Assembly: GCF_006345805.1 (NCBI RefSeq)
Contig: NC_042999.1
Span: forward strand, 65,224,001 to 65,288,000
From: Octopus sinensis
Taxonomy: Eukaryota
DNA length: 64,000 bases
Direction of reading: 5' to 3'
Below the pieces are notes generated by a model, which did not search any database, was not told the DNA's origin, and saw nothing but the letters and a program-made list of their open reading frames with translations. Below are positions 5,900-60,520 of this stretch, one piece after another. A program made the translations under genes and the position numbers. How positions within the stretch are numbered: position 1 is the first letter of the stretch; every line of letters begins with the position of its first letter.

Positions 5900-7455
5900 A
5901 ATACTACAAAGTAGAGAAGGAGAAACATACTTAAATCAATAAAACATCAATTATCCGATGATACCCAATCATACTTTAATACTACACATTACATATGAGT
6001 AAAGGCATTATAAAAATGAGATATACAGTATAGTAAAAAGATAAAGAGATATAAGTAAAAATTTTCAAATATAATATCAATTAAATCAAAACTGACAGCT
6101 GTTTCCGCAGTGAGGGCAGTCATACCTCATTTAACCTCTTAGCCATAAAGGCAGGTATAATGAGGCATTAACAAGATGCCCACGGCTCTTCAGAGAATTA
6201 AATAAATTTGTTATAATTGTGAAAAATATAATATAACCATATACATATAAATATAAAAATATAAAAATGTAAAATATAAAAATATAAAACTTTATACATC
6301 TAATGCTACACTTATATAATATAATACTTATTGGTACAATAAAGAAGTAACATAACAAATAAACAAAATAATATCATTGTATATACTAATATTAATAAGT
6401 ACCGATATTATACATATTTGGCTAATAGTTTTAAAAAAAAAAAAACTAACCACTAGGGAGATGAAAATATAATTAAAACCATGGTTCGTTCATAAAATCT
6501 AAAGCTATGAAAGTTATAAAATTACTATTAATATAATAATAATAATAATAATAAAAATAATAATAATAATAATAGATACAGTTAAGTTAGCACACCATCC
6601 ATCCTTTCAAGATCGAAATAACTATTTATTTTCTTTTGTGATTTAAATTTCAAACCAATAGCCAATCGAATTAATCTAAATTTTCTTTACCTAGTGATCA
6701 GCATTTCTAAAACTCATAGTTATTTCGATCTTGAAAGGATGACTTGGTGCTAACTTAACTGTATCTATATTATTATTATTATTTTTATTATTATTATTAT
6801 ATTAATATTAATAGTAATTTTTATTAACTTTCATAGCTTTAGAATTTTATGAACTGAACCATGGTTTTAATTATTATTTTTCATCTCCCTATGTGTTAGT
6901 TTTTTTTTTTTTAAAAACTATTAGCCAAATATGTATAATATCGGTACTTATTAATATTAGTATATACACTGATATATATTTTGTTTTATTTTGTTCTGTT
7001 TACCTTCCTTTATTGTACCAATAAGTATTATATTATATAAGTGTAGCATTATGATGTATAAGTTTTTATATTTTTTATATTTTACATTTTTATATTTTTA
7101 TATTTATATGTATATGGTTATATTATATTTTTCACAATTATAACAAATTTAATTTAATTCTCTGAAGAGGCCGTGGGGCATCCTTGTTAATGCCTCATTT
7201 ATACCTGCCTTTATGGCTAAGAGGTTAAATGAGGTATGACTGCCCTCACTGCCGAAACAGCTGTCAGTTTTGATTTAATTGCATATTATATTTGAAAATT
7301 TTTTACTTATATCTCTTATCTTTTTACTATTACTGTATATCTCATTTTATATAATGCCTTTACTCATATGTAATGGTGTATTAAAGTATTGATTGGGTAT
7401 CATCGGATAATGATGTTTTATTGATTTAAGTATGTTTCTCCTTCTCTAATTTTGT
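5900..7455. repeat. About 1.55-kb fold-back inverted repeat with an HHR in each arm (family C)
   Basis: Arms about 5900-6627 and 6717-7455 are reverse complements with many small indels. Spacer about 90 nt. The right arm ends on (TA)n. Confidence 0.9.
7150..7278 (+). ncRNA. Type I hammerhead ribozyme with long stem II (family C)
   Basis: CTGAAGA 7162-68. Stem II GGC-c-GTG-GGGCA / TGCCC-t-CAC-t-GCC. GAAA 7254-57. Palindromic stem III ACAGCTGT. GUC site, cleavage after 7265. Stem I interrupted. A damaged mirror copy lies at about 6090-6195 (-). Confidence 0.7.
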
Positions 7456-8713
7456 GTATATATATATAGATCTATATATATATATATATATATATATATT
7501 ATATATGTATATACATATATATATATATATATATATATATATATATATATATATATATATATATATATATGCTCCTCAAACTTTCAATCCTCTTTTCAAC
7601 AATTTCTACTTGCATTTGTTCTCCGAATCTGGCTGTTTTTTAACCTTCACCTCCAAGTCTCTATTGTGGGTTTAGCTTGATCCTTGAAGAGTGTCATCAG
7701 CTGTTGGAGACTGAAAAAAAATATCTTTCACTCTGAAGAGTTCTCGGTATACCTCTGTATCCATACATCTACACGGCGGAATAAAATACTGTTTCCGCTT
7801 GTTGATTTCCTGATGTCCTTATTTTCAAATTGTTTAAATACGTTTCAATCTCGTAATTAGAGTGCAGAAGATCAACAGCAATCAAAACAACCAAAAACAG
7901 AAAGGAAGCAGTAAAGAGAAGGGGAAAATATATATCGTACTTGATGCAATGCGTTCGTCTCGTCAATTCTCGTCACTGTTGTTGTATGTAACCCATATCC
8001 TCATTCTAATTAATAAACCCATTCGTTCCTTCTTCGAAATTTGATTTTGGAATCTACTTATCTGTCTTCCCTGCAAGACACGACTAAGACCGGTCATATG
8101 AACCATTAACAGCATCAAGTTCACCAGTTTAAGAGAGTCCGTAAAAGTCAAGAGAATTGAGTCTCCCTCCAGACTCTGCAAGTGTTATGCCTAACATTGT
8201 CTTCAAATATTTGCCCTAACAGCCAATTGCTAAAACACAGAACTAAGAATAATAATCTGATGAGTGACCACTGTAATTTTTGAGTGACAACCAAGTCTAA
8301 GCAATAACTAAAATATTCAGCAAATACCATTGTGAAAGATTGCTTTACTTAAAGAAATAAAAGACTAGAGCTGTCTAAATTGGAAGTGAGTATTTAATAT
8401 GATCTTTCGGAAACTGATAACTTTCATAGTTAACATTATTTATTTATCGGAAGTTTAGTGCGTCAAATTGGTAATTTACCTTCACGGAACTTGTATTTGT
8501 TGACATTTGCGCGTACATTTATATTCGAGTTTTTTTTTTTTTAAAAGTAGTTCCTAGTTAATTGTTCGAAGTGCATGACATAGTAGCAAAGTAACCCTCA
8601 TATGGCTCCCCATCGTCTTGAAATTCGTTACTGTTGGAAATATAGTCCGGTTTATATAATGTTACAATAATGTGTGAAAATGTTTGTCTGGAATGATTTT
8701 GAGTAGAATTCTG

Positions 8714-9290
8714 CTTTAATCAAAACAGAAATTGGTCTAAGTAGTAACAACAACAATATCTGCATGAACCACAATCACCACCACCACCACCACCACCACC
8801 ACCAACAACAACAACAACAGCAACACAACCACCACCACCACCACCACCACCAACAACAACAACAACACAACCACCACCAACAACACGAACACTAACATCA
8901 CCACTACCTTCACCGCCACTGCTCCCACCGCCCCACATCCACCCCTCCACCCCCGCCACCACCACAGTAGCATAATCATCAACAACATCATCATCATCAT
9001 GAGCAGCAGCAGCAGCAGCAACAGCAGTAAGAGCATCAACAACAACAAAGCAACAAAGCAACAACAATGCTTTAATCAAAACTAAAAGGGCTCTAAGTTG
9101 TAACAACAACAACAACGAGAAAGAAGAACTGCAATATCTGCATGAACAACCACCAACAGCAACAAGATCAACACGAACACCCCCCACAATAACACCAGCA
9201 TCATCATCAGCAGCAACAACAACAGCAACAACAACACCACGAACAACATGAATAACAATAACAGTAATAACAACAACCAAAGCTAACTTC
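8714..9290. repeat. CAC/CAA/CAG trinucleotide low-complexity region with a diverged tandem duplication of about 355 bp
   Basis: GCTTTAATCAAAAC...TAAG...AATATCTGCATGAAC occurs at about 8714 and again at about 9069. Confidence 0.8.
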
Positions 9291-10000
9291 TCTAAGGTTT
9301 TTTTAATTTCCAAGTGTCCCAGTGTACTAGTTGCTCTGTTTATTGCACGAGGAACGTTGAAGAAAATCAAGGTTAATGACGCCCTTATCACCAATCAAAA
9401 TAGTGATCATGTCTTTCTGTGCCGATTGCTGTCTTAAAATTCTTTGAGATGGAGGAGCGGTATTGACGCCCATTACTTGGATTGCACATGTGCTTCTGGA
9501 TCATAACGTTATATCAAAACCTTACTCCCTGTCGGCAGACAGGTGTTGAAACAAGATATCCATATCTGGCTTCAATCATTTTCAGCCGACCACTGCTGTG
9601 TCCCACCGTTCTCTCCCCCAAATCGGTTGTCAACCCACGACGTATCCAATTTGCACACGTTTCCCGACATCCCATATCTTCCACTGATCTTTTGTGATGT
9701 ATGTACACAAAGTCTACTCGTACTACAAGCTCTCAGATTGAAAATCGTCTGATTACGTGAATTAATTCGTTCACTCCTTCGCAATTCATTTCATGGGTCA
9801 CAGTCGTTTATTTTCGACTATGTCGTTTCTTTGTAGTTTTGATTTCGTCATTTTTTTTAACCTTCTTCATCAGTCTGTGCACTTTGATGTAGTCCATAGT
9901 GTTATCTCCCAAACAAAACAATTTCATTTTGTAGATGCTTGACTGGAATACAACAAACGAAGATGATTTACTATGGAGGAAGTAGTCTAACAACCGTTTC
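9270..10000 (-). pseudogene. Highly decayed mariner transposase remnant
   Basis: Patchy translation EDMGCRETCANWIRRGLT, YDPEAHVQSK and MITILIGDKGVINLDFL, resembling mariner LG.RK.CA.W.P..LT / YDPE / FWD.KGVI..DFL. Confidence 0.6.
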
Positions 10001-59145: not shown

Positions 59146-59389
59146 ATATATATATATATATATAATATATATATATATATATATATATATTATATATATA
59201 TATATATATATATATATCTGTATGTATATATATGTATAAATATTTATATATGTATGTATATATATATATATATATATATATATATATATAAATATTATAT
59301 ATGTATATATATATGTATGTATATATATATAAATATTTATATATGTATATATATGTATGTATATATATATATATAAATATTTATATATA

Positions 59390-59580
59390 TAACGGGAACC
59401 TTTATGGAAATAAACAAAAGACGAAGGCAGGTGGAGTACAAACAAACAATTGTATTAGTATGGCGCTCAGGAATATAAATAAAACAAGTCTTTTATGTTT
59501 CGAGCCTACGCTCTTCAACAGAAAGATACGGAGAAAAGAAACACGGAGAGAAACAAGGAGAGAAACAAATGCGTGCAGAA
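59390..59580 (-). mobile_element. HHR family A element
   Basis: TCTTT-CTGTTGAA-GAGC-gtag-GCTC-GAAA-CA-T-A-AAAGA at 59489-59526 (-). Confidence 0.65.
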
Positions 59581-59842
59581 TCTATCTATCTATCAATCTA
59601 TCTATCTATCTATCTATCTATCTATCTATCTATCTATCTATCTATATCTATCTATCTATCTATCTATCTATATATATAATATATATATATATATATATAT
59701 ATATATATATATATGTAATATATATATATAAATATATATATATGTATATATATATAATATATATATATATATATATATATATATGTATATATATATATAT
59801 ATATATAGATAAGAAAGTTTGTTTGGTAAAGCACGTGGGTGA

Positions 59843-60520
59843 ATATATAAGAAAATAGTAAAGTGTGAAAAAACGACAGAAGGCTTAAATGTTAAAAAAT
59901 ATATATATTTGTGTCAAAATGTCTGGAGAATATTGGAAAAATTTTTTTTTTTTCCTTTCCTTAAAATGACATAATTTTAAAATTTTTAAAGAAATTACCG
60001 GTTTCGCGTGTAGCTTTTCAAATTTCTTGTGACGTTATGTTTATATTGCATGGAATTATCGTTGTTTTTATTTCCAGGAGATTTCTAAATAAGGGGAGGT
60101 AGTGAGTGATTTTTTCCGGTGTAGGGGAGATAATCGCTTAAAATTTTTTTCCTTTTCCTTGTTAATTTCTCTGTGTCAGTATGTTACTGACACAGAGAAT
60201 TAACAAGGAAAAGGGAAAAAAATTTTTAAGCGATTATCTCCCCTACACCGGAAAAAATCACTCACTACCTCCCCTTATTTAGAAATCTCCTGGAAATAAA
60301 AACAACGATAATTCCATGCAATATAAACATAACGTCACAAGAAATTTGAAAAGCTACACGCGAAACCGGTAATTTCTTTAAAAATTTTTAAAATTATATC
60401 ATTTTAAGGAGGAAAAAAAAAATTTTTCCAATATTCTCCAGACATTTTGACACAAATATATATATTTTTTAACATTTAAGCCTTCTGTCGTTTTTTCACA
60501 CTTTACTATTTTCTTATATA
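59843..60520. repeat. About 680-bp fold-back with a 40-nt minimal HHR-like motif in both arms (family H)
   Basis: Centre TGTCAGT-ATGTT-ACTGACA. AAGAAAT-TTGAAAA-GC-tacac-GC-GAAA-CC-GG-T-A-ATTTCTT at 60339-60378 (+) and 59989-60028 (-). Confidence 0.9.

Follow-up and report, generated by a model that had tools for sequence, protein, structure and literature searches.

Head-to-head hammerhead-bearing repeats in TA microsatellites of Octopus sinensis as probable insertion products of Penelope-like retroelements

A 64,000-nt stretch of the Octopus sinensis genome (NCBI RefSeq assembly GCF_006345805.1, contig NC_042999.1, positions 65,224,001 to 65,288,000 of the forward strand) contains a series of short inverted dimers and solo elements that are associated with (TA)n microsatellites and bear type I hammerhead ribozyme (HHR) motifs. 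There are eight dimers and two solo copies, belonging to seven families (A–G), in this stretch, referred to below as the window, with positions counted from its first nucleotide. These loci probably arose when Penelope-like retroelements (PLEs), or short RNAs using PLE machinery, were inserted, and the mechanism was probably target-primed reverse transcription from both strands of a (TA)n break, with the truncated cDNAs then joined. They are a known kind of insertion, and not a new element class.

Inverted dimers and their TA flanks

The window is AT-rich (GC about 23–45%). Simple repeats of period ≤6, mostly (AT)n, make up 16% of it, and perfect (TA)≥5 only 6.7%. Palindromes were sought throughout by inverted-repeat searches and minus-strand self-BLAST. 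The latter puts the seven inverted-dimer loci listed in an earlier note on this DNA within a few nt of where they had been described, with palindromic spans at 5894–7466 (family B), 18703–18916 (A18), 27232–27482 (A27), 28067–28512 (family C), 32363–32613 (A32), 58420–59146 (family D) and 59843–60521 (family E). By blastn, the loci at 18722, 27190 and 32387 are a single family, A, and families A to E show no similarity to one another; the note's count of five unrelated families among the seven loci therefore holds, as does its description of their flanks, since all 14 outer ends of these dimers adjoin (TA)n.

Three more members were recognized in addition to these: an asymmetric dimer, F (27487–28009), and solo copies of families A (A14, 14331–14446) and G (35717–36133). 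(TA)n is also found at the 3′ end of A14 and at both ends of the family G copy. Eight of ten insertions are thus head-to-head, an arrangement that is frequent and not obligatory. Arm lengths range from 48 to 740 nt across the dimers, and spacers from about 3 nt (E) through about 90 nt (B and C) to 278 nt (F). Arm-versus-arm identity is about 80–97%, with no whole arm at 100%; families D and E, put at 97–99% and nearly spacer-free, were called young.

After low-complexity filtering, all seven self-overlapping palindromes in the window are of the HHR dimer type. The remaining inverted matches are dispersed copies resembling short interspersed elements (SINEs) and one element with long terminal inverted repeats (TIRs) and no TA flanks. 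The latter served as a negative control. Its inverted arms (49410–49651 and 50307–50548) are 242 nt long and 99% identical, with a 655-nt unique centre and no HHR, and the whole structure (49410–50548) may be a DNA transposon with long TIRs, or else a duplication that was recently made in inverted orientation.

Hammerhead motifs

The descriptor used for type I HHRs consisted of stem I, CUGANGA, a stem II closure, GAAA, a self-complementary A15.1...U16.1 segment and H17, with a stem II insert of up to about 130 nt and 0–1 unpaired base at either side. A search by strict regular expression (CTGANGA...GAAA) was of little use, its pattern being too restrictive. With a perfect core, the descriptor matches six sites in five families, compared with a mean of 0.04 and a maximum of 1 in 300 shuffles (Poisson probability about 1e-9). 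With ≤1 core mismatch it matches 11 sites, compared with a mean of 1.33 in 100 dinucleotide shuffles and none in the reversed sequence. HHR-like motifs in the window are thus far more numerous than chance would give, and they are confined to these elements. Ten of the 11 sites are inside TA-flanked elements; a site at 40728–40775, with one core mismatch, was taken as a chance match, about one being expected.

The polarity that had been reported was found throughout, all left-arm motifs reading on the − strand and all right-arm motifs on the + strand, and the two arms said to have only the 3′ half of an HHR (the right arm at locus 18722 and the left arm at locus 27190) do so. The distance from the motif to the outer element boundary is 40–190 nt in families A–G. 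Judged from its sequence, the HHR of every family appears to be of the minimal type I with a self-complementary stem III that the note had proposed: ACUCNGAGU in A, ACAGCUGU in B, AUAUCAUAU in C, ACAAUUGU in D, ACCGGU in E, ACAUGUGU in F and ACGG-UGCA-UCGU in G. Helix II inserts are 55–90 nt long in B, D, F and G.

The type I core is complete in A14, F and G, in the two arms of B and, with weak stem II closure, in the D right arm. Other cores are degenerate: CCGAAGA in A18 and A32 (C at position 4), CUGGAGA in A27 (G at position 6) and UUGAAAA in family E (U3, A8). In the left arm of D, GAAAC is replaced by GGAGC, and the core is also degenerate in some family C arms. Fold z-scores are −4.7 for the right-arm HHR of B, with stem II formed, and −4.9 for that of G, where the centroid consists of stem I and stem II; the minimum free energy fold of the right-arm candidate in D is not hammerhead-shaped.

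Tails, junctions and the origin of the dimers

Each of the eight dimers has a one-sided segment, the element-derived nature of which is proven for family A only. In A18, a tail-less left arm (18720–18823, −; HHR-like motif at 18765–18815, core read there as CCGAAAA) is followed by a right arm (18821–18959, +) that is 5′ truncated, beginning within stem II, with the HHR 3′ half at 18830–18854 and a tail at 18899–18959. In A27 the tail (27180–27249) belongs to the left arm (27180–27326, −), which is also the one with only the HHR 3′ half (27296–27321); the tail-less right arm (27327–27465, +; HHR at 27369–27419, core CUGGAGA) has the longest 5′ extension of the family. A32 is nearly symmetric, with a tail-less left arm (32387–32488, −; HHR-like motif at 32432–32481, core CCGAAGA) and a right arm (32490–32657, +) with its HHR at 32498–32546 and a tail at 32591–32657. 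The tail is the same in all three dimers, roughly 70 nt running from AAATTCCTCTATTT to TACCAA, and the partner arms end at TTTACAGAT, straight into (TA)n. Solo A14 (14331–14446, +; HHR at 14369–14419, perfect core) has no inverted partner and ends in TTACAGAT followed by (TA)n, the same terminus as that of the tail-less arms. Within 14250–14446, three degenerate subrepeats of ~30 nt, each including TAACGGTCA, precede A14.

Junctions are not the same from one family A dimer to the next: the right arm of A27 reaches about 100 nt further 5′ than its left arm, and matches A14 there. In an alignment of the family, G at column 143 is found only in the two arms of A18, A at column 145 only in the two arms of A32, and five columns distinguish both arms of A27 from other family A copies, while no column splits left arms from right arms. 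It follows that both arms of a dimer derive from a single source in one event (or have been homogenized by gene conversion), and that different dimers arose separately; the sample is small, A18 and A32 having a single private column apiece. In family A, the differing junctions and the private substitutions shared between arms mean that every insertion forms its own fold-back, which is not propagated as a whole. The source of A18 and A32 already had C for U4, which suggests that catalysis is not needed for spread.

By analogy with family A, the one-sided segments of families B (173 nt), C (47 nt), D (93 nt), E (35 nt) and F (149 nt) are probably tails as well. In family B, the putative tail (5735–5907, −) lies between (TA)n and the left arm, with no right-side partner and no other copy in the window. 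The left arm (5908–6625, sense strand −) is 93% identical to the inverted 6716–7452, and its HHR (6094–6193, −) matches the descriptor, with a perfect CUGAAGA core, a long stem II, GAAAC and C17. Beyond an unpaired spacer (6626–6715), the tail-less right arm (6716–7455, +) ends in (TA)n; its HHR (7162–7265, +) has every invariant core position, the G10.1-C11.1 pair and a stem II hairpin of about 86 nt.

Family F, which was absent from the earlier list, is an asymmetric dimer (27487–28009, −). A possible tail (27487–27635, −) is followed by a long arm (27636–27961, −) with a perfect-core HHR (27701–27774, −; 12-bp stem II), and then by a short inverted arm of 48 nt (27962–28009, +), an inverted copy of the long arm's own 3′ end. 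It sits between A27 and C, and the three are probably separate insertions in one former TA tract. Family C itself has a putative tail at 28020–28066 (−), a left arm at 28067–28245 (−; HHR at 28152–28185, core CUGCCGA) and a right arm at 28334–28512 (+; HHR at 28394–28427, core AUGAAGA, with a bulged A before a 5-bp stem II).

The two remaining dimers are those called young. In D, a putative tail (58327–58419, −) precedes a left arm (58420–58778, −) with an HHR relic at 58462–58539, in which GAAAC has become GGAGC, and a right arm (58788–59146, +) with the perfect-core (CUGAAGA) candidate at 59027–59104. In E, the putative tail is at 59808–59842 (−), and both the left arm (59843–60176, −) and the right arm (60190–60521, +) have HHR-like relics, at 59996–60021 and 60346–60371 respectively. 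The right-arm relic reads UUGAAAA-GCUACACGC-GAAACCGGUA and has stem I as AAGAAAU/AUUUCUU, with C3 and G8 substituted. Finally, the solo family G element (35717–36133, +) lies between two (TA)n tracts without an inverted partner. Its HHR (35916–36004, +) is the most canonical in the window, with a CUGAUGA core, an 8-bp stem I, a long stem II (helix II of 67 nt) and a UGCA-capped stem III.

Insertion by Penelope-like retroelements

Much of this anatomy has been described for PLEs. Craig et al. (PMC8557442) found that PLE insertions have a high degree of 5′ truncation, often directly adjoin an inverted 5′-truncated copy, giving inverted repeats, and have a tail of 30–40 bp, often at one end only. 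HHRs are located in the pseudo-long terminal repeats (pLTRs) of PLEs, and Naiad, Neptune and Hydra elements insert in (TA)n, the Hydra ones combining canonical HHRs with (TA)n targeting (PMC8557442). In vitro, the purified PLE protein of Anolis Poseidon cleaves and extends both target strands, prefers AT-rich DNA for cleavage, and begins reverse transcription at two adjacent internal RNA sites, the interval between them being the genomic tail; HHR-dead mutants still insert (Frangieh et al., 2024; PMC11167929). For the Anolis element, help from the protein in HHR cleavage has also been reported. Taken together, these results (PMC8557442, PMC11167929) would account for the outward 3′ ends, the inward truncated 5′ ends, the one-sided tail, the TA flanks and the tolerance of dead ribozymes. 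Known features of PLE HHRs further include a large helix II with an unpaired base in front of it, and a helix III that is palindromic (PMC4209133). The bulged base is present here in family C, and a self-complementary stem III in all families.

The octopus loci are like the endonuclease-bearing PLEs of the Neptune, Hydra and Penelope/Poseidon clades in having the HHR near the 3′ boundary, heavy 5′ truncation, an inverted truncated partner, a tail at one end, a (TA)n or AT-rich target and a ribozyme that appears dispensable for insertion. They are unlike them in that no reverse transcriptase or GIY-YIG open reading frame (ORF) and no partial tandem of pLTRs was seen in the window, their arms are only 48–740 nt long, and helix II has inserts of 55–90 nt in four families (B, D, F and G), far beyond the 6–8 bp given for helix II of PLE HHRs. 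A partial parallel is the twin priming of LINE-1, a long interspersed element (LINE), in which the second target strand also primes reverse transcription, so that inverted segments are joined internally. Twin priming, however, inverts part of a single copy, whereas both arms here duplicate the same 3′ region, and the enzyme here would be of the PLE type, extending both strands.

By analogy, the mechanism of Anolis Poseidon would have made these copies too. A PLE endonuclease/reverse transcriptase would cut both strands of an AT-rich target, here a (TA)n microsatellite, and each free 3′-OH would prime cDNA synthesis on the element RNA, near its 3′ end. The two cDNAs would extend towards one another, stop early (giving 5′ truncation) and be joined at their truncated ends, leaving two partial head-to-head copies with their 3′ ends facing outward into the TA tract. 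With reverse transcription primed from both sides of the break, polarity would be outward. An HHR lying close to the element's 3′ boundary, as it does in PLE pLTRs, would then read on the − strand if in a left arm and on the + strand if in a right one. The tail-bearing arm would have started at a distal initiation site and the tail-less one at a proximal site, so that two start sites would give one arm with a tail and one without. Since it is self-complementary, (TA)n presents the same substrate on both strands, and this may favour symmetric double priming.

Several observations weigh against this reconstruction. Each putative tail of families B–F has only one copy in the window, and some could be flanking DNA between closely spaced TA tracts; at 35–173 nt, the tails here also differ from the published 30–40 bp. 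Near-perfect centres, with spacers of about 0–9 nt, are found in D, E and A32, which is not what would be expected of two cDNAs truncated independently. A step of copy-back or template switching is suggested by them, and spacers this small would point to a switch onto the partner cDNA instead of two independent stops. Some of the TA sequence could also have been produced by the elements as 3′ tails, instead of being there beforehand as a target. The ORF listing, Pfam searches of ORFs resembling reverse transcriptases, and six-frame scans for GIY-YIG and YxDD patterns gave no PLE reverse transcriptase or GIY-YIG ORF in the window, and neither an autonomous partner nor a shared terminus was found there for any of families A–G. 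Nor do Rfam hammerhead models give any match at the gathering score over the whole window, and on small sub-windows the best is Hammerhead_3 on family G, at 12.5 bits and E = 5.2. At E ≤ 10 the Rfam list was swamped by TA-repeat matches to microRNA (miRNA) models. The long helix II inserts together with the minimal helix III are the probable explanation of the Rfam result.

YxDD motifs in the six-frame scan are only of the LINE type and outside the arms, no dimer arm contains an ORF, and no consistently open frame was found downstream of the HHR, where the Anolis element has a coding N-terminus. Exact-pattern scans of metagenome contigs for families A and E had no match. The families may be truncated autonomous PLEs or non-autonomous derivatives; the second option would be comparable to the relation proposed between retrozymes and pLTRs (bioRxiv 10.64898/2026.07.22.740005). 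With no ORF, many mutated cores and two HHRs on opposite strands, the copies were most likely dead on arrival.

What is mildly novel in these loci is the helix II inserts of 55–90 nt, which probably hide the HHRs from Rfam, and the presence of one tail per dimer in all eight cases. A more specific interpretation of these two features, which seems rather unlikely, is that the dimers are the footprint of coordinated asymmetric priming, or that the families are a specialized non-autonomous lineage with a long helix II. In the former case, a dimeric PLE enzyme may carry out asymmetric two-strand priming in vivo on self-complementary (TA)n, and the single tail in eight of eight dimers suggests that its protomers split the two RNA start sites by a fixed division of labour, and not by independent choice. 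In the latter, there may be hammerheads with an unusually long helix II (55–90 nt) that standard models miss.

Alternative explanations

The earlier note saw these loci as a distinct, family-independent class of ORF-less fold-back elements with a fixed head-to-head architecture, mobilized by PLEs and targeted to microsatellites. The latter part agrees with the anatomy (truncation, inverted partner, HHR, one-sided tail and (TA)n), so that PLE mobilization and microsatellite targeting appear likely. The former part was not upheld. Solos A14 and G exist, family A junctions differ, the dimers are asymmetric, and published PLE anatomy already includes (TA)n targeting, HHRs within pLTRs, a tail on one side and a truncated neighbour in inverted orientation. 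In such a class the whole inverted dimer would transpose as a hairpin, via RNA or excision, and the head-to-head arrangement would be functionally required. The idea could draw on the presence of the motif in every one of the seven self-overlapping palindromes, and on the high arm identity (97–99%) and almost spacer-free centres of the young D and E. Both arms of A32 and the left arm of A18 stop at the same internal position (CCAGATAAC / TCAGATAAC), and loss of 26 nt from the centre of a unit like A32 could have given A18. Nevertheless, it is quite unlikely. The right arm of A27 matches solo A14 further 5′, private substitutions are common to both arms of one locus and not to same-side arms across loci, and one arm is always tail-less, so the unit would be asymmetric. 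The published PLE mechanism, moreover, already yields the same form.

Non-LTR (long terminal repeat) retrozymes, whose tandem HHR repeats give rise to circular RNAs by double self-cleavage, would have to be rearranged here to an inverted form. Like the octopus families, they are small, rich in AT and devoid of coding sequence, and the stem III of their type I HHR favours cleavage as dimers (PMC7229834). The motifs seen here are type I HHRs too, their stem III is self-complementary, and the elements that carry them are 100–750 nt long, AT-rich and without ORFs. Animal retrozymes have been reported to derive from PLE pLTRs (bioRxiv 10.64898/2026.07.22.740005), and non-LTR retrozymes are probably PLE-dependent (PMC7229834; bioRxiv 10.64898/2026.07.22.740005). 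Retrozymes, however, are direct tandem repeats, whereas the copies here are inverted or solo. No locus has two same-strand HHRs of one family that could bound a monomer, and no family has a direct tandem repeat. A transcript across a dimer would have one sense and one antisense HHR, and thus no monomer excision, and many cores are mutated at invariant positions. A retrozyme origin is therefore distinctly unlikely.

Miniature inverted-repeat transposable elements (MITEs) or foldback DNA transposons targeting the TA dinucleotide, with the hammerhead-like motifs incidental, would also give short non-coding inverted repeats beside TA. Tc1/mariner remnants are present in the window, and family F is MITE-like in having 48-nt termini at 98% identity around a 278-nt body. 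Such an origin is very unlikely given perfect-core HHRs at about 150-fold over expectation, always facing outward. Unlike these transposons, the dimers have asymmetric termini, their symmetry being broken by the one-sided tail; inner truncation points vary in family A, and a solo half-copy shares its 3′ terminus. Target-site duplications are unreadable inside (TA)n. Assembly artefacts, from palindromic chimeric reads or mis-joins in TA-rich sequence, deserve mention too, as the PLE literature says that such structures trouble assembly and TA tracts are hard to assemble; but the arms differ by 3–20% with indels, arm lengths and tails are unequal, and family A is found at three loci with different flanks, all of which makes an artefact extremely unlikely.

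Other repeats in the window

A SINE-like dispersed repeat of about 250–300 nt has at least 10 copies with 71–99% identity, including 2718–2966, 21690–21915, 22745–22989, 25168–25430, 32978–33248, 46480–46800, 46784–47082 and 48764–48938. The reference copy, 46480–46800, ends in (CA)n followed by (TA)n, and ARAGORN found no tRNA-like part in this repeat. A shorter family of about 190 nt (76–89% identity) is represented at 114–298, 16159–16322 and 59383–59570, the last between TA-rich and (TATC)n tracts. It contains a hammerhead-like near-match, UUGAAGAGCGUAGGCUCGAAAC, that fails the descriptor.

LINE-type reverse transcriptase fragments are found at 1312–2153 (+), 3081–5451 (−) and 42578–43726 (−), with Pfam RVT_1 matches and FADD/YADD motifs. 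Among named sequences, the one nearest to them (60% identity) is a hypothetical protein from the octopod Argonauta hians, whose locus looks different in composition from the window, with 40% GC, 0.5% TA tracts and no HHR match. The Tc1/mariner-type transposase-like remnants are at 12344–13370 (+), 56312–57402 (−) and 60862–61059 (−). Within the second, 56545–56919 has a DDE_3 match slightly under the Pfam cut-off, and the other two were judged by eye.

Long trinucleotide-type repeats at 8720–9394, 19904–20476 and 40400–40700, with translations consisting of runs of V, G or I, are low-complexity sequence and not coding. Dozens of sub-threshold Rfam matches to miRNAs (mir-297, mir-3149, mir-1277) in microsatellites, for example in the TA/ACAT tracts at 14630–15140, are likewise low-complexity artefacts.

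Implications

Annotators of invertebrate genomes rich in microsatellites should take short palindromes flanked by TA for PLE insertion scars, and not for MITEs, hairpins resembling miRNAs or a new class of element. Ribozyme scans based on Rfam overlook the hammerheads of these elements. The window offers a compact natural sample that agrees with the in vitro extension of both strands by a PLE enzyme from two internal start sites. Counting genome-wide how regularly dimers have one tail, and how widely their junctions vary in position, could constrain how the two cDNAs are joined.

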